Part shown: in pieces, positions 1-14,178 of the stretch
Position numbering within the stretch: position 1 is the stretch's first letter
How the letters are laid out: each line of letters opens with the position of its first letter
DNA from: Hyaloraphidium curvatum SAG 235-1
Lineage: Eukaryota > Fungi > Monoblepharomycota
NCBI GenBank assembly: GCA_025558095.1
Contig: JAIVFI010000028.1
Location: 62,001 to 126,000, forward strand
DNA length: 64,000 bases
Reading direction: 5' to 3'
Notes under the pieces: generated by a model
Told to the model about the DNA's origin: nothing
Seen by the model: only the letters and a program-made list of their open reading frames with translations
Database searches by the model: none
Made by a program: the position numbers and the translations under genes

Positions 1-902
1 GCCGGTCTCGGGGTTGACGTACGACACCTGCACGCGCTCCTCGCCGGCCTCGGCCAGCGCCAGCAGCGCCGCCTTGGCCTCGGCCCAGGGGTAGCGCAGC
101 ATGGGGTAGGGATCGGCGGCGCGGCGGAAGGCCGGGGTCGGGAGCACCCCGCCGCGGGCGTAGAGCTTGTCGCCGCGCTTGGCCGTGTGCCCCTGCCTCG
201 AGCCCTCGATGACGTACGACGCCTCGGCGTAGTACACGAGGGGCAGGTCGAGCACGTCCAGCCAGACCACGGGCTCCGAGCCGGCGTGCTCGTGCTCGTG
301 CCACTGCCCCGTCGGGGTGAGGATCAGGTCGCCGCGCTCCATCGGACACTTCTCGCCCGCCACGACGGTGTAGGCGCCCTTGCCCTCGACCACCATGCGC
401 ACGGCGTTGGGGGTGTGCCGGTGGGCGGGTGCGAACTCGCCGGGCAGCAAAAGCTGCATGCCTAGGTAGATCGACGGCGACGCCTGCATGTTCTCGAGGC
501 CGCGGCCGGGGTTGGCGAGGACGAGCACGCGGCGCTCGGCCTTTTCCATGGGGGTGAGCTCGCCGGCCTTGAGGAGCAGGGGGCGGATGTCCTTGTAGGC
601 CCACGCGGTGGCCTGCGTGCGTCGCGAGGGCACGCCGGGGGGGAGGACGGCGCGGAGGGATGGCCACAGGGGGACCAGGTTGAGCTTGGTCAGGTCGTCG
701 CGGTAGTCCTGCAATGGGACGAAAGAGTCAGCACGATTCTCAGCTTCAAGGGCAGTCGGCCGCGCACCTGCGGCAGATCTTCGAGCCGCCCGAGGGCCGG
801 CAGGTCCGTGATGGTCTCCTGCATCTTGCCGGCCGCCTTGGCGGCGGCCTGCGGGGCGACAGCGTGCACGCCGTTGGCGACTTCCTGGGTGACGGGGGAC
901 AT
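1..902 (-). CDS. Gentisate 1,2-dioxygenase (cupin, NagI/GtdA-like); 3' end runs off the window
   Basis: Exon 1 is 902-768, a GT-AG intron is 767-709, and exon 2 runs from 708 past position 1. The spliced protein reads LGRLEDLPQDYRDDLTKLNLVPLWPSLR...AERRVLVLANPG...QLLLPGEFAPAHRHTPNAVR...GDLILTPTGQWHEH, with the cupin His ligands typical of proteobacterial gentisate dioxygenases. Confidence 0.92.
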
Positions 903-1172: not shown

Positions 1173-4100
1173 ATGTCGAGCCTGAACGTGCAGAAGCCGG
1201 ACGTCGACGTCGGTGCGTCCCTTTCTCGCCGCGTCTGTATGTAATGAGGAGCTAGCAATCCCACCGTACACTTAGAAATCCCCCTACGCCCCAAGAATCA
1301 GCTCCTCATCTACATTCAAACCAAATGCGACCGGCGCGGGGGCCGGAGCGTTGACAGCGGCGGCTTCGGTGCACAGCTGAAGCCAGTGTTGGAGTTGGGC
1401 CGCGACGCCAAGAGCCCAGGCCACCGCGATCCGTTCGCGGAAGCGCCGCACAAAACGAGAGTAAAGGCCATCGAGGTCCACGGGCTGCCCATCGCGGCCG
1501 ACGATCCCGGGATACTGGATGCGCCCCATCTCCGAGGAGAAGCGCGAGAAAGTGGCAGAGACAGCGCTGTACGAATCAAAAGCAAGCACGATCAGAGGGT
1601 AGAAGTTGGCGTTGAAGACGAAACGGGAGTAGTCCTTCCTGGCGGCCTCGACCCGCCGTTCGACTGCGTGGCCCGGGACCGAGAAGACCAGGCCCGTGTG
1701 CAAATGGGCCATAGAGGTGAGGGTCTTGATCTCGAGCAACCACCGTTTCCGGGTTTCGCGGTGCGTGATGAGAACGTCGCCAAGGCGGCCAGCATCCGCA
1801 GGCGTGGGCGGGGTGACAGTCTCGTAGCCATGTGCAAGGAGGTTTGGCGGCATGGGGTGCACGCGGAGGAGCGGGATGGAGCGAAGCGCCGCGCGGATGG
1901 CCGCGCAAATGTCGTCGTGACCAGGACTGAAGAGATCCCGGCCATAGCAGCCCGAGAACGCGTGCTCCCCCGTCAGCGACATGGCCGATCGCTTGCAGCC
2001 CCGCCGGCAGGGCAAGGAAAGACCAGGGTAGTCGGCCTCGTGCAGGAGCGGGAGGCAAAGCCGGAAGCGTACAAGTAAGCGGAAAAAGTTGTTGCGAATG
2101 TGGTTGGCAAGCAGCGCGGGAGAGGCAGTCAGGAAAGCCGACAGGCCGTCCTGCGCCTGGACGAGCCGCTTGCGGCGCTCCAGACCAGCGGAAGTGGTGG
2201 GTTGCAAGGCAATCAGAGCCGCGAGGCGGCGCTGGTCCTCGAGACGCGTAAGGTCGCTCTGCAGGCCGTGCCAAACCGGCTGGGCGAAGAAACTGGCGTC
2301 CGCAGGGAGCGTACGGCGGGCGGGCGCGGCGCCCACCGGTTGCCCAGCACGCGCAGCCTCGGCGTACGCTGCGGCCGTGTCATCCTCGACACGCTCAAAG
2401 GCGGGGCGGAGGGCCTCGATGACGGGAACCAGTTCCCGCACGTGCTCCACGCCCACACCCCGGGCCGAGGTTCGAAGACCAAGCATGGCGTCCAAGGGGC
2501 CCGCCGTGAGGTTGAGTGAAGACAGGTAAGCCGCCGAGGCCACCTTCTCCGATGACAGAAGCCCCATCCCCGAGTAGTGCAGACCCAAGAATACCTGCTC
2601 CCGCACAGTCCGACCCTCCACCGACAGCGGATCCAGATCCTCGGCCCGATCTCCCAGCAAGCGCAAGAAGGTGGTGAAAAGCGCGTTGTCAAGACGTCGA
2701 GCAAAGGGTTGGGTAACCGAGGGGGGGAGAATGCGGAGCCAAAACGAGAAGAGCTGGGTCACACAGAGACGGAGGAGGGAGTACAGGCCCTGGAGGGAGG
2801 GGATGTCGGCCGGCATGGCGTAGCCGAGCGCAGCGCGCTCGATTTCATCGAGAAGAGCGGCAATGGAGTCGATCTTGGCCGCGAGGAACGACTCCACATA
2901 GGCAGGGGTGCCGACCGGGGCACCTAACACCTTGAGGCCGCACGAGCGAGCGAAGTCAGGCGAGCCCGGGGCCGACGCCGTGGCATGCGCCTCGGGGTCG
3001 GCCTCGTGAGGCGGGAAGCCAGCGACGCGGATGTTGTGGGCCGCACCGGCCGCGCGCACCCGCTCCAGCACGGCCGGGTTCGTCGAGAGCGAAAGCAGGT
3101 AGCTCTTGTCCGGGCGGTGGGTCATGCCGAGGGAAGCAAGGCTGTCACGCACCTCTCCCAGGACGGCCATGACCGAGTCCAGCGGCCCGACCACGGTGAG
3201 GTCGTCGAGGTACCCAAGGATGAGGCAGTCGGGGTGCCCAGAGCGGATGGGCCGCAGCATGCGGCTCATGGCGCAGGAGAAGATGGCAGACGACAGCGGG
3301 TCGCCCTGGATGTTGCCCTCGTACATGGTGATCCGGAAAAGGAGCTCCGCCGAGCGCCGGTCGCGGAAGTAGGCGTGGGAAGGGCGCGAGTAAACGAGGT
3401 TGTAGTACGGGATAAGCTGAGGCACCTGGCGGACCACCTCGCGCGCGAAGAGGCGGCGCAGCGTATTGAAGGCGTTCCTAGAGTCGACCTTCATGACGAC
3501 GTGGTCGGGGAAGGCCGCCAGCCACGCGTTCACCGCGTGGGCGGTCGCCTCCGCGCCCCCGTCCACCCCGTGACCCAGGTCCTCCTGCTGTTGGAGCTTC
3601 CTCAGAAGAGCCTTGTGCCGCACGGCCAGGTACGAGCCCGCGAGCCGCGTGATGCCCTCCATAATGCCAATCGGCCGGAGCCCCCCCTCCGGCTTGAGCA
3701 GAGGGACGAGGATTTGATCCGTGAGGAGCGGCCGGAGCATGGGGGTGTCGAGTCGGCCAGTGCACACGCCGTGCACCATGGCCGCCAGCGGGCGGAGCTT
3801 CCGTCGCGTCGCGTCGTTCTCGCAGTTGTGCACGATGAAAAGTTTGGCCATGCTGAAACCCGACATGCCGGCCCCCACGCCGTCCTTCTTCCGGCGCAAC
3901 CGGGCCCAGATGTCCTCCAGGAAAGCCGCGTCCGTGTAGGCAGGGCAGGGCGCGGGCGCGTTGGGGGGCAGAGACAGCCGACACAGCGGCTCTCCCTCCC
4001 GCGGCCCCGGGTACAGCTCCTCCAGTTCCGCCTGCAGCGTGGGCGTGAAGCCAGCCGGAACGGCCTCCCCCGAGAGCGCCGCGGACGCAGCACCAGGAGC

Positions 4101-7100
4101 GCCCTTCAAGGCGGCAAGCACGATGGCCTTGAAGAGCTGGTAGTTGAGCGGCCGCAGCCCGTCCCGCCGCGCGCCCCGGTTGACCTGACGGGCGGCGAAG
4201 TAGTTCTGCTCGTACATGTAGTCCCCCGACATGACGTAGCCGCCAAACGCAAGGTAGGCGGTGAGAGTGCGGTGCAGGTCGGTTTCCGGTGCCGCCGGGT
4301 CCTCGTAGGCCCGTTGGAAAGACTCGCTGGCCCGGAAGGCGAGCGTGCTCCAGGTGGTGGTCCGGTAGCGGTGCTTCAGCGGCTCCGGCGGCGGCGCCCC
4401 CGCGCCCCCGCCCGGCGGCGGATCAGGCCCGGGACCCCCGGGTGGACCACCGTCGCCTGGGTCGCCCGGATCACCGCCGTTGCCGTGCCCGCCAGCCGCG
4501 GCGTTGCCGCCCGGCGCGCCGTCGCCGCCTGGGGGATCACCGCCGTCCGGGGCGGCACGCGCCGCCGCCGCCGCCGCCGCCAGCGCCGCCCGTTGCGCCT
4601 GGACGTCCTGCGGGGCGTCGGCCGCAACCCGGGCGGCCGCAAGGGCCGCCATCAGCGCGGGCGCGGGTGGCGAAGCACGGGGAGATGCCGACGATGCCGC
4701 CGGTGACGCCGGTCCCTCCGCGCGTCCCGTGGCAGCCGCCCGCTCGGCACGCACGCGGTCGAGGAACTCGACAAGATCGGGTGGAAGCGAAGCTAAAGAG
4801 ACGCCGAGTGGCGGGTTAGCTGCGTCCGGGTTGCACGAGGTGTGCTGTCCAGAAACACCGGCACCAGAGGCGTTTGCGGCGTAGGGACGCCGGCAACCCC
4901 CGCACCGCGCGAGCCCCATGGCGCGCAACGCATCGGCAGACAGGCGCTGCATCGCCAACCAGTGCTCCGGGCTCCGTGTGACCCGAAGATGACCGTCCCG
5001 TTTGTTTTTGTTTGGAGTTGGCTGGAAGCGGCAACCATCAACCGGGCACGCATGGAGGCCGGGTTCAGCAGGCGCCTCCGCCATCGGCACATCGCCGTCG
5101 ATGCAAGATTGGTGATGAAGAGATAGAGCTCCGATGTTGGCGAAAGCTGCCGCGCAGCGGTGGCAGCTGTAAGGCAGGAGCGGCGTGCGGCTCATGGCGA
5201 ATACGGTGGCGGCGGCGATGCCGGTGTCCCGCCGCCAGGATCAGCTACCGCGGACGGTGCTTTGTCCGACGAGATATCCCAATCGTCGAGCGCATGTGTC
5301 CGCATCCAAACCTCCTGTGACTCGGTCAGGTCGCCCCCCGCCCTGTGCCAGGCCGCAAGCGCCGACCACGCGTCACCGATAGCATCACGGCCGCCGTCAT
5401 CGAGGAGCTCGGAACCTGGCCATTCGAGGTGCGCCGGCGAACCGGGCTCCGTGTGAGCATACCAAGGAGGCAAGGTGCGCGTCGGAGTGGATACTTCCGA
5501 GGAGCTCTGCCCCCCCCCGGCCGTTGGTGCCGGCGGCGTGCCGGGGGTTGTGCGGGGCGGCGCAGGCGGCAGCTGCAAGCTCGGCACGGCGGTTGCAGCT
5601 GGGGTTTCCCACGGAGGATGGCCTGGGTGCGCCGGGAGCATGGAAGCGGCCGAAGCCGGGGCATCAGCGATCAAGATCGGCGATGACGAGGAGGGAGATA
5701 CTTCCGAGCGTGCCGCCCCTTTCCCCCCCGCTGGTGCCGGCAAGCGGGAGGAGCCGCGGGGCGGCGTGGGCAGAGTGTGACCCTCGGCCAAGCTAGGCAA
5801 GCGTCTCCCAAACCTCTCAGAACTGACTTCCGCCCCCTCCAGTCGTTGTCGGCGGCGGTATCGGCGGCCTCGCGACCGCTTTCGCGCTCACCCGCAAGGG
5901 CCTCAAGGTCCGCGTGCTCGAACGCGCGCCCGAGTTCGGCGAGGTCGGCGCCGGCCTGCAGATCGCGCCCAACTGCACGCGCATCCTCGACGACTGGGGC
6001 CTGCTGGACGAGGTCGTCAGCCTCGGAGTGCTGCCCGAGAACATCGTCGCACGCGATGCGATCACCGGCAAGGAGGTGGGGATCCTTTTGCACCGTCATC
6101 TGGTGCACATCGCTGATCACGCCTCCGGTGCAGCTCACCCGCCTTGACCTCAAGGACTGCGAGCGCCGCTACGGCCACCCGTACCTCGTCATCCACCGCT
6201 CGGATCTGCACGGCGTCTTTCTACGCGCCTGCAAGCGCGTGGGCGTCGACCTCGTCACCAACGCCGCCTGCACCGGCTACGAGAACGTCGACGGCGGCGC
6301 CGTCGCCAAGTTCGGCGACCGCACCGAGCGCGCCGAGCTCGTCATGGCCGCCGACGGCATGCACTCCGTCGCCCGCCCCCTGCTAAGCGACGACAAGCCC
6401 GTCTCGTCGAGCTACGTCGCCTACCGCGGCACGCTCCCCGCCGACAAGGCGGTCCGCGAGCTCGGCGTCTCCCTCAAGGACGTCGTCGTCTACGTCGGGC
6501 CCAAGTGCCACCTTGTGCAGTACCCCCTCCGCGCGGGGGAGATGTTCAACCTCGTCGCGGTGTTCGAGTCGCCCAAGGCCGTGCGTGGCGAGGCCGACTG
6601 GGGCACCCCCGACGAGCTCGACGGCGCGTTCGCCAAGACCCACCCCGGGGTGCGGGAGTGCCTGCCCAACATGTGGCGCGACAAGTGGTGGCGCATGTTC
6701 ACCCGCGAGCCGATCATGGACTGGGTCAAGGGCCGCATCGCGCTCACGGGCGACGCCGCGCACCCGCCGCTGCAGTACCTCGCCCAGGGCGCGGTCATGG
6801 CCATCGAGGACGCCTGGGTACTTTCGGAGCACGTGGGTCTTGCGGGCGGGCCCAAGGGGTCGGCGAGCAGGGGCACCGCGACGGGGATCCCGTGGGAGAG
6901 GGTGCTCCAGGCGTACAACGCGGTGCGGCCGGAGCACTGCCGCCGCGTGCTCACGACCGCGTGGATCTGGGGCGACCTGTGGCACCTTGAGGGCGAGGCG
7001 CGCGAGTGGCGCAACAGGGTGTTCGAGGAGCGCGACACCCACTCGTACGACTACGTGGATTGGCTGGTGGGTTTCTCGCGCTTGGGCCTGGCGCTCTGTT

Positions 7101-7269
7101 CACCTCAGCTCACCTCATCCTTCCTCCTCCGCAGTACGGACCCACCGCGCTCTACCCCGAGCACGAGAACAAGATGTTCGACCCCAAGGCCTACGAGAAC
7201 CAGTCCTCCAAGAAATCCCCGCCTGCTGTGCGCCGCGACTCTTCGCAGGGCTTCGAGGCGCGCCTCTGA
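1173..7269 (+). CDS. 3-hydroxybenzoate 6-hydroxylase-like FAD monooxygenase (4 exons; intron 1 carries the retrotransposon)
   Basis: Exons are 1173-1212, 5843-6075, 6134-7066 and 7135-7269. Joining exons 1 and 2 restores [24 protein letters not shown] (GxGxxG). Further motifs are [23 protein letters not shown] and [21 protein letters not shown]. The protein ends in -ARL. Confidence 0.88.
1284..5195 (-). CDS. Retrotransposon ORF2: N-terminal zinc fingers, reverse transcriptase, CCHC knuckle, REL endonuclease (1303 aa)
   Basis: Zinc fingers are CHRC..H..C, CPVDGC..H..H and CGGC..H..C. RT motifs are [27 protein letters not shown] and KVLGAPVG. The C-terminal part has CRRGC-x10-H-x4-C, GHDD, GDVLI and LEIK. 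There are no stops or frameshifts. Confidence 0.93.
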   Translation of the reverse strand: MSRTPLLPYSCHRCAAAFANIGALSLHHQSCIDGDVPMAEAPAEPGLHACPVDGCRFQPTPNKNKRDGHLRVTRSPEHWLAMQRLSADALRAMGLARCGGCRRPYAANASGAGVSGQHTSCNPDAANPPLGVSLASLPPDLVEFLDRVRAERAAATGRAEGPASPAASSASPRASPPAPALMAALAAARVAADAPQDVQAQRAALAAAAAAARAAPDGGDPPGGDGAPGGNAAAGGHGNGGDPGDPGDGGPPGGPGPDPPPGGGAGAPPPEPLKHRYRTTTWSTLAFRASESFQRAYEDPAAPETDLHRTLTAYLAFGGYVMSGDYMYEQNYFAARQVNRGARRDGLRPLNYQLFKAIVLAALKGAPGAASAALSGEAVPAGFTPTLQAELEELYPGPREGEPLCRLSLPPNAPAPCPAYTDAAFLEDIWARLRRKKDGVGAGMSGFSMAKLFIVHNCENDATRRKLRPLAAMVHGVCTGRLDTPMLRPLLTDQILVPLLKPEGGLRPIGIMEGITRLAGSYLAVRHKALLRKLQQQEDLGHGVDGGAEATAHAVNAWLAAFPDHVVMKVDSRNAFNTLRRLFAREVVRQVPQLIPYYNLVYSRPSHAYFRDRRSAELLFRITMYEGNIQGDPLSSAIFSCAMSRMLRPIRSGHPDCLILGYLDDLTVVGPLDSVMAVLGEVRDSLASLGMTHRPDKSYLLSLSTNPAVLERVRAAGAAHNIRVAGFPPHEADPEAHATASAPGSPDFARSCGLKVLGAPVGTPAYVESFLAAKIDSIAALLDEIERAALGYAMPADIPSLQGLYSLLRLCVTQLFSFWLRILPPSVTQPFARRLDNALFTTFLRLLGDRAEDLDPLSVEGRTVREQVFLGLHYSGMGLLSSEKVASAAYLSSLNLTAGPLDAMLGLRTSARGVGVEHVRELVPVIEALRPAFERVEDDTAAAYAEAARAGQPVGAAPARRTLPADASFFAQPVWHGLQSDLTRLEDQRRLAALIALQPTTSAGLERRKRLVQAQDGLSAFLTASPALLANHIRNNFFRLLVRFRLCLPLLHEADYPGLSLPCRRGCKRSAMSLTGEHAFSGCYGRDLFSPGHDDICAAIRAALRSIPLLRVHPMPPNLLAHGYETVTPPTPADAGRLGDVLITHRETRKRWLLEIKTLTSMAHLHTGLVFSVPGHAVERRVEAARKDYSRFVFNANFYPLIVLAFDSYSAVSATFSRFSSEMGRIQYPGIVGRDGQPVDLDGLYSRFVRRFRERIAVAWALGVAAQLQHWLQLCTEAAAVNAPAPAPVAFGLNVDEELILGA
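5192..5641 (-). CDS. Putative retrotransposon ORF1 (Pro-rich, ~149 aa from ATG 5641; frame open to the element end at 5800)
   Basis: The open frame ends in a TGA (5194-5192) that overlaps the ORF2 ATG (5195-5193) as ATGA. I recognise no domain in it. Confidence 0.4.
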   Translation of the reverse strand: MLPAHPGHPPWETPAATAVPSLQLPPAPPRTTPGTPPAPTAGGGQSSSEVSTPTRTLPPWYAHTEPGSPAHLEWPGSELLDDGGRDAIGDAWSALAAWHRAGGDLTESQEVWMRTHALDDWDISSDKAPSAVADPGGGTPASPPPPYSP

Positions 7270-7485
7270 GCGATGAGTAGGAGATTGGACGATCCGAGTT
7301 GGTAATGGCTGCCCACGCACATGTGACTTTTGATGAATTGCATGATAGAGATGATCGCCTTACAGTTTCCGGCCCTTCGAATGCATCGCAGGACTTCGTC
7401 GTGCTCATCAGCCTCGAAGTTGTGGCAACGCCTTCGGCTGACTCGTCTGCTCTTCGTTTGTCCCCCACCTCGCTTCTTTCCGAAC

Positions 7486-9246
7486 ATGACGGCCCCAAAC
7501 GGGGACCGCAGCGCCGATGCCATCGCGTCCGAGTGGCTCGCCGCTTTCGGCAGCGCGCTTTCCGTGGGCGCACCGGCGGGGATCGCGGCGTGTTTCTCCC
7601 CGGAAGAGGCGCACTGGCGCGACATCCTCGCCTTCTCGTGGGACATCCGCACGACTTCCGGCGCCGGAAAAATCGCGGAGCGGCTTGCCGAACTGCTGCC
7701 CCCCGCGAAGCCGCGCGATTTCCGGTTCGCCGAGGGCCGCACGCCGCCGCGGTCCGCGAAGCGCGGTGGTCGCGACGTGGTCGAGGCCATCATCTCCTTC
7801 GAAACCGCCGTCGGACCCGCGTTCGCCGTCGCTCGGCTCGTAAAGGAGGGAGATCGTCACGCCGCTGTCTCGCTAATGACGGTCCTGGACGAGATCCGCG
7901 GGCACGAAGACCCGGCAACGGGCTCCCGCTGGCAGAACGTGGATTGGAAAAGGAACTTCGGGGGTGAAAACTGGTTGGACAGGCGCAACCGCGCAAGGGC
8001 GTACACCGACCACGATCCTGCTGTATTGGTCGTCGGTGCCGGCCAGGCGGGGCTGTCGCTGGCTGCCAGGCTGACGCAGCTGGGCATTGACGCGCTGGTC
8101 GTGGACCGAGAGAAGCGGATCGGCGACAACTGGCGCACGCGGTACCACGCGCTGACGCTGCATAACGAAACGCGCGTCAACCACCTGCCCTACATGCCCT
8201 TCCCCCCCAACTTCCCCGTCTTCATCCCCAAGGACATGCTGGCCAACTGGTTCGAGCTCTACGCCGAAGCCATGGAGCTCAACGTCTGGACCGAGACGGA
8301 GCTCTCGCACGCCGTGCGTGACGAAGCCGCCGGTTGTTGGACTGCGGTCCTCAAGCGCGCCGACGGCACCGAGCGGCTCATGCGCCCCCGCCACGTCGTC
8401 TTTGCCACCGGCGTCTCCTCCATCCCCCTCACCCCCGACCTCCCCGGCCTCTCCTCGTTCAAGGGCACCGTCGTCCACGCAGGCCACTACGGCAGCGGCC
8501 TCCCCTGGCGCGGCACGCGCGCGCTGGTCGTCGGCACCGGCACGTCGGGCCACGATGTCGCGCAGGATCTGACCGTCTGCGGCGCGCATGCCACGCTGAT
8601 CCAGCGCAGCCCGACCATGGTCGTATCGCTCAAGGAGGCCCAGTCGGCCTACGCGCTCTACGACGAGCCCATCCCCTTCGCCGACAAGGACCTGCTAGCC
8701 GTCTCCACCCCGTTCCCCATCCTGCGCAGGGTGCACCAATCGCTCACCGCCGCCGCGCGCGACGCCGATCGCCCGCTGCTCGACGCCCTCGCCGCGCGCG
8801 GGTTCCGGCTCGCCTTTGGGCACGAGGACACGGGCTGGCAGATCATGTACCAGCAGCACGGAGGAGGGTACTACTTCAACGCTGGTGCGTCAGAGATGAT
8901 TGCGGATGGCGCGGTTGGGCTGCTGCACTGGGATGACCTCGAGGCGTTCTGCCCCGAAGGGGCAAAGATGAAGGACGGCACCGTGGTACCCGCCGATCTG
9001 GTCGTCCTGGCGACGGGATACGCCTCGCAGCGCGAGACGGCCCGGCTGGCGCTCGGCGACGCGGTGGCGGAGAAGATCGGCCCCATATGGGGCTTCGACG
9101 ACGAGGGCGAGCTGCAGAACATGTTTAGGCCGACCCCGCAGAGGGGGCTGTGGTTCATTGCGGGGAGCCTGGCGCAGTGCAGGATCTTTTCCAAGGTGCT
9201 GGCGCTGCAGATTAAGGCTAGGGAGCTCGGGATCGTGGACGGGTAG
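7486..9246 (+). CDS. Flavin-containing monooxygenase, type II (N-terminally extended), intronless, bacterial-like
   Basis: Motifs are VLVVGAGQAG, GDNWRTRYHALTLH, the FMO fingerprint FKGTVVHAGHY, VVGTGTSGHD and LATGY, preceded by a ~170-aa N-terminal extension. Confidence 0.88.
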   Translation: MTAPNGDRSADAIASEWLAAFGSALSVGAPAGIAACFSPEEAHWRDILAFSWDIRTTSGAGKIAERLAELLPPAKPRDFRFAEGRTPPRSAKRGGRDVVEAIISFETAVGPAFAVARLVKEGDRHAAVSLMTVLDEIRGHEDPATGSRWQNVDWKRNFGGENWLDRRNRARAYTDHDPAVLVVGAGQAGLSLAARLTQLGIDALVVDREKRIGDNWRTRYHALTLHNETRVNHLPYMPFPPNFPVFIPKDMLANWFELYAEAMELNVWTETELSHAVRDEAAGCWTAVLKRADGTERLMRPRHVVFATGVSSIPLTPDLPGLSSFKGTVVHAGHYGSGLPWRGTRALVVGTGTSGHDVAQDLTVCGAHATLIQRSPTMVVSLKEAQSAYALYDEPIPFADKDLLAVSTPFPILRRVHQSLTAAARDADRPLLDALAARGFRLAFGHEDTGWQIMYQQHGGGYYFNAGASEMIADGAVGLLHWDDLEAFCPEGAKMKDGTVVPADLVVLATGYASQRETARLALGDAVAEKIGPIWGFDDEGELQNMFRPTPQRGLWFIAGSLAQCRIFSKVLALQIKARELGIVDG

Positions 9247-9447
9247 AGTGTGGGCGGCAAGTCGCGATCTGTACGGGGAGAGCGCCGTCCATCAGTGTGT
9301 GCCTGCATCCATGTACAAAATCAAATCGAATGGCAACCTACTCCGATATGTTGTAGTTCGGAGAGGATCCGAATGGCGGGCTTGGGCTTGGCGTCATTCT
9401 CGCGCGGCCAGCGCAAGTGGCGACATCGCGAGAACTCCCTCTTCGCG

Positions 9448-11253
9448 ATGCCCCCGAAGAAATCCGGTGTTCCTAGAAAGTCCTGCGGGCCCTGCTTCGT
9501 GGATAAAAAACGATGTCTTCCCGGCACGGCCTCGGGGGCTGCGTGCCAACGCTGCGCGACGACCGGCCGGACCTGCGACTTTGCGGGCGCAGACGTGCTT
9601 CCGACACCAATCGCGCCGCCGACCGATGACATGACTCTTTTGGACTCTTCTTTGGACGTCGACGTCGGCACGATTTTATTCTCGGGACTTGCGGAGGCCG
9701 TGGAGTCATTCGTGGCGGGCGGCGCGCTTCCCATTCTCCATCCCACGACGCTCGCCGCACCGGGCCCGACGCTGCTGCTCGCTATTGCTGCTCTGGGCTC
9801 TTCCGATCTCGATGACGCGCGGACTTTCGCCGGGGCGGCCCTGACGAGCGTCCTGGCCGGTCTGCTGGACCCCCTCGAGACGGCACAGAGCGTGGTCCTG
9901 CTCCTCCATTACGCCATTTTCCGGACAATGTCGGCGGCCGTCCCACCGCTTCTGGTCACGGGACGTGCCGCCCTGGCTGCCCTGTGTTTGGACGCCTCGG
10001 GGAGCTTCTCACAGGAGATGCGGGAACCTGCCACGGTCGAGCAGTGGATCCGGGCCGAATCAGCATTGCGCTGCTGGTGCATGTTCAACGAGCTGGACAG
10101 CGGTGTGGCCTCCTACTTTGGCGACGCGGCCCTCTTCGATGCCGCCGTGTACCCCGTGCCTCTCCCGGCGCACGACAGCTATTTCCTCAGCCCGGACCCC
10201 CAATCGTCCTTCGACGCCCTCGTCGAAGCCGGAGCGTTCGGTCCGGGCCGCTTCGCCATCTTTTCGGCCAGCGCGGAGATGCACGCGCTGGAAGCCTGCA
10301 CCGCGGCCGTGCGGCAGATCGTCGGCGCCATCTTTGACCGGCGCGCGAGCTGCCTCGCCGCGTGCTCCGTCAAGGCGTTTGTCCGCAGTCTGCGCGCCAA
10401 GCTCCGCGGTTTCGCCAGCGATCACGGAGTATGTCCGTTGGCGATCGTCGGCAAGGAACGGGACGAGTGCACGCCGGACGAGGCCACCTATTGCGACGCG
10501 CTGGACGCTCTATACGACCTCGTTGGCGTCCTGTTGGATTCCATGCCTGAAGGTGTTGGGGTACCCCTGGCCGCTGGGGAGCCGCTCCCGCTCCTGTCGG
10601 ACCCTAGCTTCCCCGACCGCACGTGCGCGCGCATCGTTTTCATCGTGGTGTTCAATGTCCTGGCTACCTGCTTCGAAGCCGCCGCCGACCCGCGGGAGGG
10701 CTCCTCATCCTTGCCCTCGGTCGACGCCCTGTTCGGCTCCCCCGCCTTCCTCCGCATCCTGGACCGCGTGCAGACCATGTGCGACCTCCTCGAGCACCTC
10801 GACGACGCCGACCTCCCGCAGCTGCACCCGACGGTCATCGTCCACATGATGCGGGTTGGCATGTTCTCCGTCGTTCTGTTCCGCGTCGTGCGGGACGACC
10901 CGGCTTCGGGCTGGGCCGCGGACAGACTGCGCAGGAACGTGGAGGACATCGCGCGCGCACTGACGGCCATGGGGAACGGCAGCGCGCCCGCCGCGGCCAA
11001 GGTCGCGGCCGATTTCGCACGGGCCGCGAGGGCCGCGGGGGCGCTGGACGAGGGGTATGTCTCGCCGGAGGTGACGGATGCGGAGCTCGGGGAGGTACAC
11101 GTCGAGTTTGCCAAGCTGGGGATCGCGGAGCGCGAGTCGCCCGTGGCCGCGCTGTCGGAAGCGATGATCCAGCTCGACCGGGGAGTGTCGACTTGGCTGC
11201 CGTCGCTGGAGGATTGGACGCGGAGGCCGATTTCGGGCCAATTGATTCCGTAG
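9448..11253 (+). CDS. Zn(II)2Cys6 transcription factor
   Basis: CGPC-x6-C-x9-CQRC-x6-C at the N-terminus, plus a fungal TF middle-homology-like segment ESALRCWCMFNELD. Confidence 0.85.
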   Translation: MPPKKSGVPRKSCGPCFVDKKRCLPGTASGAACQRCATTGRTCDFAGADVLPTPIAPPTDDMTLLDSSLDVDVGTILFSGLAEAVESFVAGGALPILHPTTLAAPGPTLLLAIAALGSSDLDDARTFAGAALTSVLAGLLDPLETAQSVVLLLHYAIFRTMSAAVPPLLVTGRAALAALCLDASGSFSQEMREPATVEQWIRAESALRCWCMFNELDSGVASYFGDAALFDAAVYPVPLPAHDSYFLSPDPQSSFDALVEAGAFGPGRFAIFSASAEMHALEACTAAVRQIVGAIFDRRASCLAACSVKAFVRSLRAKLRGFASDHGVCPLAIVGKERDECTPDEATYCDALDALYDLVGVLLDSMPEGVGVPLAAGEPLPLLSDPSFPDRTCARIVFIVVFNVLATCFEAAADPREGSSSLPSVDALFGSPAFLRILDRVQTMCDLLEHLDDADLPQLHPTVIVHMMRVGMFSVVLFRVVRDDPASGWAADRLRRNVEDIARALTAMGNGSAPAAAKVAADFARAARAAGALDEGYVSPEVTDAELGEVHVEFAKLGIAERESPVAALSEAMIQLDRGVSTWLPSLEDWTRRPISGQLIP

Positions 11254-11282
11254 GGGATGGTTGATTGGGCAATTAACCGCAT

Positions 11283-12043
11283 CTACTCCGCCTTGCCGAC
11301 CGTCAGCTCCACCTCGGCGATGCCCTCGACGCTACCCTCGATCTTGTCGCCAGGGAGCACCGCAGCGACGCCCTCCGGCGTTCCCGTGTAGATCAGGTCC
11401 CCGGCCTGCAGGTGGTAGAACTGGCTCAGGTCGGCGATGATCTCCGGGATGTCCCAGATGAGCTTCGCAACGTCCGAGGACTGCTTGGTCGCGCCGTTGA
11501 CGCTCAGCACGATCGCCCCCTTGGACACGATCTGCCCCTCCATCGGCACGATCTCGGAGCACACGCTCGAGTGCTCCACGTCCTTGCCCAGGTCCCACGG
11601 CCGGCCCTTGTCCCGGGCCTCCAGCTGCACGTCGCGTCGGGTCATGTCGAGCCCGGCGGCGTATCCATACACGATCTCGGCGGCCTTGTCGGCAAGAACG
11701 CGGAAGCCGGGCTTGCCGATGGCAACCACCAGCTCCATCTCGAAGTGGTAGTTCTTGGTCGAGGGAGGATAGGGCGTGGTGGCACCTGGAAGCGCGAATC
11801 AGTTGGAGTCCGAGCGCGACTGGTAGTAAGCACCGCACCGCTCAGGGTCAGCGTGTCAATGGACTTGGTGAAGTAGAACGGCCTCTCCACCGACTTGTCC
11901 ACCGGCCGGCCCATCTCCCGGGCGTGAGCATGGTAGTTGCGGCCCACGAAGAAGAGGCGGTTGACAGGGAACTTTCGCTGCTCGCCGCGAACGGGCAGCG
12001 ACCGGACGGGCGGAGGCTCGAACAGGTATTCCGAGGCGGTCAT
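11283..12043 (-). CDS. Fumarylpyruvate hydrolase (FAH family, NagK-like)
   Basis: Exons are 12043-11839 and 11785-11283 (53-nt intron). Motifs are VGRNYHAHAREMG, FYFTK, YHFEMELVVAIGK, GLDMTRRD, GRPWDLGKD and GDLIYTGTPEGV. Confidence 0.92.
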
Positions 12044-12291
12044 CGTGAGCGTGGGCGGAACGTGCAGACAGTCTAGACGATGCGGCAGCAGCTAGTTTGC
12101 CTGCGGACCTTTTCTGTGATTCGGGGGACAGTTGCGGGGGCGAGGCCGCGTCTATCCCCCGACTTGCCCCCCGAGGGCAAACTGCTCGACCTAGAAGAGC
12201 CGCGAGCCACGATGCCTCCCGCATTGCCTCCCGTCTTCATCGCCAGTCGCCCTCTCGGACGCTCTCCCCGACACCGACAACCACCGTCGCA
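12044..12291. promoter_or_regulatory. Bidirectional promoter between the NagK-like hydrolase and the MFS transporter
   Basis: ~250 nt separate the divergent ATGs. It contains TTGCCCCCCGA (12164-12174) plus related CCCCCGA/TCGGGGG copies. Confidence 0.5.
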
Positions 12292-14076
12292 ATGGCAGGC
12301 TGCCTTTGTGGGTGACGCCGAACGCGACGCCCGTCCCTTGGGACGCTGGCGTTGCGCGCGCTCAACGACCCGCCACTTACGCGTTTTTCTTCGCAGGGCC
12401 CGACAAGAACAAGAAGATCGATGTCGCTCAGGAGTCCTTCATCCCCGAGGGCGACTGGTCCGCGGAGGAGGAGCGCCGCATCGTCCGCAAGATGGACAAC
12501 CGCATCCTGCTCCCGTGCTTCATCATGATGTTCCTCGGCTACCTCGACCGCCAGAACATGGCCAACGCCAAGGTCCTGAACTCGGGCACCGACGAGTCCA
12601 TCGAGGCCTCGTGGAACCTCACCGGCGTGCAGTTCAACTGGGTCATCTCCATCTACGGCATCGGCCTGTTCCTCTGCGAGCCGTTCGGCAACTTCCTGCT
12701 CAAGAAGATGTCGGCGCCCAAGTGGTTCTCCCGCATCATGGTCACCTGGGGCGCGATCGTCATGTGCCAGGCCGTGGTGCACAACTTTGCCGGCGCGATG
12801 GCAACACGCTTCTTCCTCGGTGTCGCCGAGGCCGGTCTGCTCCCCGGCGTGCCCTATTACCTCTCGTTCTGGTGGGTTGCGGCCTCTCTACCTCCCGCGT
12901 TTCGACTGACCTCGGCTTGTCCTTCCAGGTACACGCAGCGCGAACGCGGCAAGCGCATGGGCGTCTCGTTCACCGGCCTCGGCGTCGCGGGCATGGTCGG
13001 CGGCTTCATCGCCATCGGCGTCTCCAACATGAACGGCCTCGGCGGCTTGTTCAGCTGGCAGTGGCTCTTTATCCTCGAGGGCATCCCGGCCATCATCTAC
13101 GGCGTCGTCCTCTTTTTCATCCTGCCCGGTTTCCCGCAAGACGCCAAGTTCCTCACCGACGCCGAGAAAGACATCGCCGTCCGCCGCCTGCCGCCCAATG
13201 CGCCTTCCGCTCTGGACAAGATCACCAAGGACGACATCCTCAAGGAGCTCGCAGACCCCGTCCTGTGGCTCTTCTTCTTCTTCCAGTTCTTGATCGCCAT
13301 TCCCAGTGGGTGTCTTTGCCGTCTGCAGCACCCGATCCGCCCTCACCTCCTCGATCTCGCAGTCGCTGGCTCCTCCGCCCTGCTTCCCTCGATCATTCAG
13401 GGTCTCGGCTTCAAGACCTCGGTCCAGGCCAACGGCATCGCCGCCCTCTCGCACGGCTGCAACACCATCGCCATCCTGATCAACAGCTGGCACTCGGACT
13501 GGACCAACGAGCGCATCAAGCACATCATCTTCACCATCGCCTTCTTCCCGCTCGTCGGCTCCCTCCCCCTCGCCATCACCGCCCTCAACCCCTCCGCCGT
13601 CCCCGCCGGCGTGCGCCTCCTCTTCGTCCTCCTCGCCGGCCTCACCACCTCGGCCTACCCCATCATCTGGGCCTACCGCGCCAACAGCTCCAAGGGCACC
13701 GGCCGGGCGACGGTCAACTCGGCCTTCACGCTCACCGCCTACGCCGGTGCCCTCGTCGTCGGGCCGTTCCTGTTCCCCAACAAGGACGCGCCCAACTACG
13801 TGCCCGGCATGTTTGCCTCGTACGGCTGCTACGCCATTTCGCTCCTTTGCTTCATCCGTGGGTCTTGGACGCCTTTGCGCGATGGACAGGCTCTGAACCA
13901 CCCTACCTCCAGCCATCCCCTACATCCTCCGCTACCAGGCCGCGAAGAACGTCGAGGACATGCAGATCATGGAGACCGGCCACCACGCGGCCATCGCGAT
14001 CCCGATCGGCAAGGTGGCCCCGGAAGTCGCGGCCGAGATCCCGGAGAAGGCGCCTGTCGCCGAGGAGAAGATCTAG
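12292..14076 (+). CDS. MFS transporter, anion:cation symporter (Dal5/Tna1-like) family, multi-exon
   Basis: Motifs are EERRIVRKMDNRILLP, YLDRQNMANA, RFFLGVAEAGLLPG, YLSFW|YTQRERGKR, WQWLFILEG and DAPNY. Several short introns are in-frame. The first exon is inferred. Confidence 0.88.
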
Positions 14077-14178
14077 ACGATAGAGAAGACTTGGAAAAAG
14101 CAGCGTTTGTAGGCTGCAATTGTGTATTGGCGATTTCGTTTCTGATTGCATGGATTGTCACGATCTTGGCGATCACAG

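Follow-up and report, generated by a model that had tools for sequence, protein, structure and literature searches.

Among retrotransposons that carry a restriction-like endonuclease (RLE), R2 recognizes its DNA upstream of the nick, and SLACS and CZAR of the CRE group have more than one open reading frame (ORF). Here we analyze a window of 64 kb, bases 62001-126000 of contig C28 of the Hyaloraphidium curvatum genome (G000), in which an element of this kind lies antisense within the first intron of an aromatic hydroxylase gene. For known members of the CRE group, the insertion sites are spliced-leader genes or telomeric repeats (PMC12857005, PMC7367193). HERO, on the other hand, includes many elements without strict repeat targets, and related RLE lineages target short repeats, so that RLE elements are not all tied to multicopy genes (PMC4640811). 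Our results make it highly probable that the copy in the window is a recent, 5'-truncated and non-autonomous member of a young RLE family that targets a short sequence word. A survey of the literature on retrotransposons of H. curvatum found nothing relevant.

The family most resembles R2 (R2Bm, R2Tg), which is its best match in both profile and structure comparisons. In both, N-terminal Cys/His motifs, a reverse transcriptase (RT), a CCHC knuckle, and an endonuclease of the PD-(D/E)XK type follow one another in that order, a poly(A) tail is lacking, and the 5' junctions vary. Sequence identity to the R2 family is very low, and in place of the single ORF and the one 28S ribosomal DNA (rDNA) target that characterize the R2 clade, we find three coupled ORFs, a target word of 6 to 7 bp, and dispersed insertions. 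L1, which prefers TTTT/AA targets, is comparable in its 5' truncation, its variable duplications, its short target word, and the target-primed reverse transcription that we propose below for the family, but it has an apurinic/apyrimidinic endonuclease (APE)-type enzyme and a poly(A) tail, whereas this family has an RLE and a word that would lie 8 bp from the nick. With the CRE group (CRE1/2, SLACS, CZAR, and the fungal Cnl1, MoTeR, and FoTeR) the family shares the form of the RLE signature (PMC12857005) and its occurrence in fungi, but it differs in its dispersed CTGAGA sites, its ATTACA(CA)n end, and its three ORFs; rather than CRE-type targets, single-copy or other-repeat DNA surrounds the 19 copies whose flanks were read, unrelated from copy to copy and with only CTGAGA in common. 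HERO and NeSL/Utopia bear an RLE as well but are described as single-ORF elements (Utopia, PMC4640811), and for them the literature surveyed reports no word specificity of the CTGAGA type. Judged from its sequence, the family is an RLE-bearing retrotransposon without long terminal repeats (non-LTR) that appears unusual in its three coupled ORFs and its dispersed, word-guided targets.

Structure and age of the inserted copy

The insert of about 4.56 kb lies on the minus strand and has enlarged the host intron from 60 to 4,630 nt. The features of the locus are listed below in window coordinates; the paralogue is a second hydroxylase copy without the element, P0011 is its protein, and L039 is a Logan contig of a related organism.

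1173-1212, plus strand: hydroxylase exon 1 (40 nt), ATG...GACGTCG, coding for 13 residues and ending on base one of the codon that follows; based on the sequence, the paralogue protein P0011, and the L039 orthologue
1213-1230, plus strand: 5' part of the original intron, with donor GTGCGT; in the paralogue, joined directly to the 3' part
1231-1236: left target-site duplication, GCGTCT (AGACGC in element sense), abutting the 3' tail of the element
1237-5799, minus strand: 5'-truncated copy of an element of ~6.94 kb, from reference position 2376 to the end; 99.8% identical to C22:21424-28352
1237-1245, minus strand: 3' tail of the element, ATTACATAC
1284-5195, minus strand: ORF3, 1303 amino acids (aa), uninterrupted; Cys/His motifs at 4833-5165, RT at 3042-3695, YLDD at 3201-3212, CCHC knuckle and endonuclease at 1731-2009
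5192-5799, minus strand: what is left of ORF2, namely 202 C-terminal codons out of 283, without the family start codon; its stop codon and the ORF3 start share ATGA
5800: one extra untemplated nucleotide (T) at the 5' junction
5801-5806: right target-site duplication, GCGTCT, abutting the truncated 5' end
5807-5842, plus strand: 3' part of the original intron, with branch point CTGAC at 5823-5827 and acceptor CAG at 5840-5842; comparable to the L039 intron
5843-6077, plus strand: hydroxylase exon 2, starting (G)TC GTT GTC GGC GGC GGT and coding for VVVGGGIGG, the FAD-binding GxGxxG motif

Deleting 1237-5806 leaves an intron of 18 + 6 + 36 = 60 nt and joins exon 1 to exon 2 in frame (G|TC). The insertion is recent, as its copy is 99.8% identical to another one elsewhere in the genome and its duplication is perfect. 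The window copy is truncated, however: other long copies run past its 5' end (TGCCTAGC...) with the same upstream sequence for a further 2,375 bp, reaching ATGGACCCCCCTGACAC, and in comparison with them ORF1 and the initial 81 codons of ORF2 are missing from it. The family 5' end that is missing here is also where a LINE-like (long interspersed nuclear element-like) promoter would be expected. Truncated LINE copies that are "dead on arrival" and lie antisense in introns are familiar from L1, and because it lacks both the family 5' end and ORF1, the window copy is best read in the same way.

An initial annotation of this locus had described an intact and possibly active element. Neither description survives the comparison with longer copies, which carry ORF1, the start of ORF2, and the family 5' end that are absent here, and the 5' terminus of other copies lies 2,375 bp further out, one of the outcomes that the annotation had itself named as refuting it. 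The 3' end and the duplication had been delimited correctly, and we can also uphold its view of a recent, antisense insertion within a former 60-nt intron and of an RT ORF that remains uninterrupted over its 1303 aa.

Within the ORF2 region, there is in addition an imperfect 45-nt direct repeat (5491-5535 and 5698-5742, 71% identity, 207 nt apart), and the same pair is present in another copy (L031:6683-6727 and 6890-6934).

Reconstruction of the ancestral intron

Two empty sites support the reconstruction. The paralogue lies inverted on the same contig at C28:153832-155515, about 86 kb off, with 95% nucleotide identity. A protein from the database search, P0011 ("aromatic-ring hydroxylase [Hyaloraphidium curvatum]"), is 99% identical and is the annotated product of the paralogue: in its last exon it agrees with the paralogue at 98% but with the window copy at only 81%. 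It starts MSSLNVKKPDVDVVVVGGG, and its N terminus is exon 1 joined to exon 2 just as proposed for the window gene. Positions 1040-1231 of the window match C28:155515-155324 and positions 5802-5999 match C28:155325-155128 (minus strand); as these match coordinates adjoin, both flanks are contiguous in the paralogue and (G)CGTCT occurs there once, an empty site that was read from coordinates rather than from letters.

In the related organism, whose hydroxylase P0012 is 80% identical, exon 1 is 37 nt long and is followed by a 60-nt intron (L039:4417-4476, gtgggt...ctgac...tcag) and then TCGTCGTCGGCGGCGGC, so that position, phase, and length of the intron are the same; a cupin gene lies upstream of this hydroxylase, as in the window. 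From the paralogue and L039 together, it follows that the duplicated bases are target DNA and that the 60-nt intron is ancestral. Full-length copies of the element agree, as they read ...AATGCCG and not AGACGC before TGCCTAGC. The proposal of the initial annotation that GCGTCT brackets the insert and that its removal rebuilds a 60-nt intron with an in-frame join is thereby borne out by P0011 and the L039 intron, and the bases of the duplication prove not to be part of the element.

Could the junctions instead be an assembly artefact, in which a repeat copy was misplaced between the two halves of the intron? The element is a multicopy repeat with 99 to 100% identity, a class that assemblers can misplace, and a near-identical paralogue without the element is present on the same contig. 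A mis-join, however, would not yield a clean 6-bp duplication, the usual 3' tail, a target motif 8 nt away as is canonical, and a 5' junction of the typical truncated form, and with about 3 to 5% divergence from the paralogue the flanks are no collapsed copy of it. We regard such an artefact as very improbable and read the junctions as those of a genuine insertion.

Copies elsewhere in the genome

A genome search with the insert returned more than 40 matches of 96 to 100% identity, nearly all of them at 99 to 100%, and the family has at least 68 candidate 3' ends that are 99 to 100% identical. The full 5' end, starting ATGGACCCC..., is present in 20 copies; such a shortfall relative to the at least 68 candidate 3' ends is typical of LINE-like elements, whose copies are often 5'-truncated. 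One natural copy that is complete (C22:21424-28352, with its tail in addition) comprises 6,929 nt followed by ATTACA(CA)n, and a search of this copy for terminal direct or inverted repeats found none. With this copy as the reference, the coding regions are as follows.

1-2139: ORF1, 712 aa; its ATG follows immediately on a short, variable leader
2132-2983: ORF2, 283 aa, overlapping the ORF1 stop
2980-6891: ORF3, 1303 aa, with an ATGA stop-start overlap with ORF2

None of the three ORFs is interrupted in the complete copies, and the same holds for most of the other copies examined. The 5' ends lie at reference positions 1, 1833, 2050, 2376, 2474, 2993, 4433, 4626, 4643, and others, while the 3' end is common to all. 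The copies are dispersed over many contigs with unrelated flanks, and clear duplications of 6 to 13 bp accompany 13 of the 19 insertions that were read at both junctions. An RT, the lack of terminal repeats, variable 5' truncation, a constant 3' end, and duplications of variable length are all hallmarks of non-LTR retrotransposons.

Several other features of these copies deserve mention. Full-length copies carry 10 to 22 extra bases between the duplication and ATGGACC, which come in two recurring kinds (...AATTTACCCGGA or ...CGAGAGT; L033:1857-1869, L034:6168-6180, L035 near 9503-9520, L032:5408-5424, and L031 near 9368-9377) and could be non-templated additions or else variants of a short leader. 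Three copies are broken at differing internal points by one and the same foreign end, TGCGAAGGTACAGGACGTCTGACATTCGG... (L014:1137-1186, L021 from ~5225, and L023 near 1500, the last on the 3' side of a minus-strand copy), which looks like the terminus of another inserted mobile element. Finally, an identical 1.17-kb 3' fragment occurs three times with a spacing of ~11,078 bp (C11:512305-513472, 523383-524550, and 534462-535629) and appears to have been carried within a larger tandem duplication.

Coding capacity and endonuclease type

ORF3 holds three Cys/His motifs within its first 121 aa and, at aa 501-718, an RT domain (RVT_1, Pfam E = 3.8e-10) whose YLDD lies at aa 662. RVT_1 was the only Pfam domain found in ORF3, and none was found in ORF1 or ORF2; an APE-type endonuclease was thus not among the Pfam matches of the three ORFs. 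Toward its C terminus, ORF3 carries a zinc knuckle followed by an endonuclease signature, located in the window as follows.

1731-2009, minus strand: zinc knuckle and endonuclease signature, C-X3-C-X10-H-X4-C-X8-GHD-X30-E-X12-LGD-X14-E, aa 1063-1155

The published RLE signature, which that of ORF3 matches apart from three minor deviations, reads C[X1-3]C[X7-8]H[X3-4]C[X9-10]RHD/N.X19-33.E.X9-21.R/KPD.X12-14.D/E (PMC12857005). An exhaustive protein search yielded 1,773 relatives at E<=1e-10, none of them above ~35% identity and the nearest being metagenomic proteins. The same C-terminal domain is present in more than 100 of the best 150 matches and in ten matches from a word search, and in an alignment of 45 homologues, the Cys/His positions and those of D, D/E, and K are invariant or nearly so.

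An AlphaFold model of the endonuclease domain (predicted local distance difference test [pLDDT] 84, predicted template modeling score [pTM] 0.83) was compared with the PDB using Foldseek, and R2 proteins came out best (R2Tg 9dou, R2Bm 8gh6, and others; probability 0.98-1.0 and mostly 1.0, template modeling [TM] score by query 0.38-0.50 and for the best 0.44-0.50), followed by Prp8 and PD-(D/E)XK nucleases, with E values of only 1e-3 to 6e-2. A search with a family profile likewise placed R2 (1e-31) ahead of L1 ORF2p (1e-23). When a single sequence was searched against the PDB, only the RT of human immunodeficiency virus was matched, around YLDD, and R2 was not among the best matches. Taken together, the RT, the signature, the conserved columns, the fold match, and the profile match with R2 identify the element as an RLE-type non-LTR retrotransposon, and the endonuclease assignment that had first been made from the letters of the window finds its support in the signature at aa 1063-1155, the columns of the 45 homologues, and the R2 fold. 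The initial annotation had called the element CRE-like; the traits that it named for the CRE clade, targets in spliced-leader genes or telomeric repeats, are not seen at the 19 insertions examined.

Choice of insertion sites

Reading the flanks of other copies, a check that the initial annotation had proposed, brought out a common word. In the window, the word and its distance from the insertion are as follows.

5815-5821, minus strand: target word TCTGAGA (TCTCAGA on the plus strand), intact beside the insertion
5807-5814: 8-nt spacer between the word and the nick or duplication; the same spacing is found in most other insertions

CTGAGA lies 6 to 8 nt before the duplication, in element sense, in 9 of the 19 insertions including that of the window, and exactly 8 nt before it in seven of these nine. 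Three further insertions have CTTAGA (two cases) or CTGATC (one case) at 8 nt, which brings the number to 12 of 19. By eye, TTGAGA is seen at 8 nt in L028, and CTGAGA appears at 7 nt in L020 once the junction, where the BLAST match had run into the target, is read again. Counted position by position, the flanks read T-T/G-C-T-G-A-G-A from -16 to -9, with a G at -1 in 7 of 10.

It might be argued that a non-specific element inserted here by chance and that CTGAGA is a coincidence. The family is indeed dispersed over unrelated flanks, and 5 of the 19 junctions lack the motif while that of C1b is unreadable. Yet CTGAGA is rare, with a background of 4.7e-5 per position in the window or about one per 21 kb, and still it precedes the duplication by 6 to 8 nt in nine insertions, with variants at 8 nt in three more; by back-of-envelope arithmetic, nine matches at that spacing would arise by chance with a probability on the order of 1e-30. 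Moreover, TCTGAGA occurs at only two sites on both strands of the 64-kb window, and one of the two is the occupied site. We regard coincidence as very improbable and favor targeting of the word. As a separate matter, the two TCTGAGA sites compare with 6.7 expected from shuffled sequence, a possible hint of target-word depletion that is not significant on a 64-kb sample.

That a single-copy intron should serve as the target had seemed unexpected at first. It is no longer surprising once the family is seen to be dispersed and specific for a word rather than for a repeat, given that the intron contains CTGAGA with a spacing of about 8 bp. In this intron the word is found on the antisense strand, which accounts both for where the element inserted and for its antisense direction. 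The word survives each insertion, which likewise accounts for tandem copies and for the re-use of targets: two copies follow each other head to tail on a single target (C1:231869-238805 and 238835-245769), the sequence of that target has served once more at C1:515043, and more pairs of 3' and 5' ends lie 25 to 95 nt apart on C2 and C43.

Our results lead us to propose target-primed reverse transcription as the family's mode of integration. In this model, the protein encoded by ORF3 would recognize (T)CTGAGA, with the N-terminal Cys/His fingers as the probable reader, and nick the bottom strand about 8 bp downstream of the word, presumably before the second strand is cut. Copying of the RNA would then start at its 3' end, ...ATTACA(CA)n, and the target-site duplication would result from a cut of the top strand 6 to 13 bp further on. 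Reverse transcription would often halt early and leave 5'-truncated copies, and intron 1 of one of two paralogous hydroxylase genes would have offered the word at 5815-5821. We tentatively go one step further and suggest, as a possibility for which we would not claim even odds, that the family is a still-active and previously undescribed three-ORF RLE lineage that reads TCTGAGA and cuts at a fixed 8-bp offset, and that re-used sites build its head-to-tail arrays.

Several points weigh against these views. The junction sample comprises 19 of at least 68 copies read at both ends, and five of these insertions (C30, L014, L016, L022, and L025) show no motif, although some of the five are interrupted by other elements or have no clear duplication; the C1b insertion shows none only because another copy sits on its 5' side. 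The ORF3 signature deviates from the canonical one, with GHD for RHD, LGD for R/KPD, and X10 for X7-8. Pfam recognizes neither the N-terminal Cys/His motifs as zinc fingers nor the endonuclease region as a domain, and the motif-reading role of the Cys/His region is for this reason a guess. The paralogue is 2 nt shorter in a CGCCGCG run (CGTCT in place of GCGTCT), which gives it a 58-nt intron and makes the exact pre-insertion sequence of the window a reconstruction. Finally, the junctions and splice signals are those of the assembled sequence alone.

The host gene and its splicing

The host gene carries FAD_binding_3 (Pfam PF01494; FAD, flavin adenine dinucleotide) and an N-terminal GxGxxG motif, and its homologues are named 3-hydroxybenzoate 6-hydroxylase or salicylate hydroxylase. 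It is therefore predicted to be a group A FAD-dependent aromatic hydroxylase of the 3-hydroxybenzoate 6-hydroxylase/salicylate hydroxylase type. The homologue search used genomic positions 5843-7276 as its query, in a frame that fits exon 3 and not exon 2, hence a coverage of 66%.

According to the initial annotation, an intact and possibly active element had left the host gene potentially functional, with the 4.63-kb intron still spliced from donor to acceptor. ORF3 is indeed open, the donor, branch point, and acceptor are untouched with an in-frame join, and all hydroxylase exons in the window are open and nearly identical to those of the paralogue. There are few residue differences outside the divergent last exon (codon 7 is Q in the window copy and K in the paralogue, and residue 48 is V rather than A), and no decay is apparent relative to the paralogue and outgroups. 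Open exons are nonetheless uninformative on function, because the insertion is too young for decay to have set in.

Other evidence speaks against this reading. Longer copies refute its "intact" part, as they show that a 5' stretch of 2,375 bp, with ORF1 and the beginning of ORF2 in it, is missing from the element. Short-intron fungi define their introns across the intron, and introns here and in the related organism are ~57 to 60 nt long, whereas the enlarged one is 77-fold larger and filled with an antisense element. Poor or cryptic splicing is therefore likely. Furthermore, the tail of the element reads GTATGT on the host strand at 1237-1242, a consensus-like donor 24 nt past the gene's own, which could compete in splicing. 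The protein collection also contains a model for the paralogue but none for the window copy, which is weak evidence because length limits apply. Altogether, we find it unlikely that an intact element sits in a normally spliced intron of a functional gene, and we think that the host copy is probably impaired. The uninterrupted paralogue, at 95% nucleotide identity, can by its sequence cover the hydroxylase function.

The surroundings of the gene are partly duplicated as well. Part of a gentisate/3-hydroxybenzoate gene cluster recurs in inverted form, with window positions 5801-14150 corresponding to C28:153832-165253 (minus strand), at 95% identity for the hydroxylase segment, 94% for a 2.9-kb segment, and 72 to 75% for other parts. 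Upstream of the hydroxylase, a divergent cupin-type gene at 1-711 (minus strand), which is 74% identical to the cupin gene in L039, shares with it the intergenic region 711-1172, and a homologue of fumarylacetoacetate (FAA) hydrolase lies 5 kb downstream at 11286-12043 (minus strand), in a gene order unlike that of the related organism.

Implications

At the locus itself, one gene of a duplicated pair has received a truncated and non-autonomous repeat in an intron, which is nothing out of the ordinary for retrotransposition. An implication for genome annotation is that first exons in H. curvatum may hide several kilobases upstream owing to such insertions.

The family is of wider interest. It represents a young RLE-type element in an early-diverging fungus, with many near-identical copies whose ORFs are open in most cases examined, and it shows that RLE elements need not depend on rDNA, spliced-leader, or telomere targets. 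A word at a fixed distance from the nick offers a simple and testable model of how RLE elements may choose their sites. If this model is true and the N-terminal Cys/His region is the reader, the family would illustrate, in a compact and natural form, how the integration of a retrotransposon outside multicopy genes can be guided by a word.

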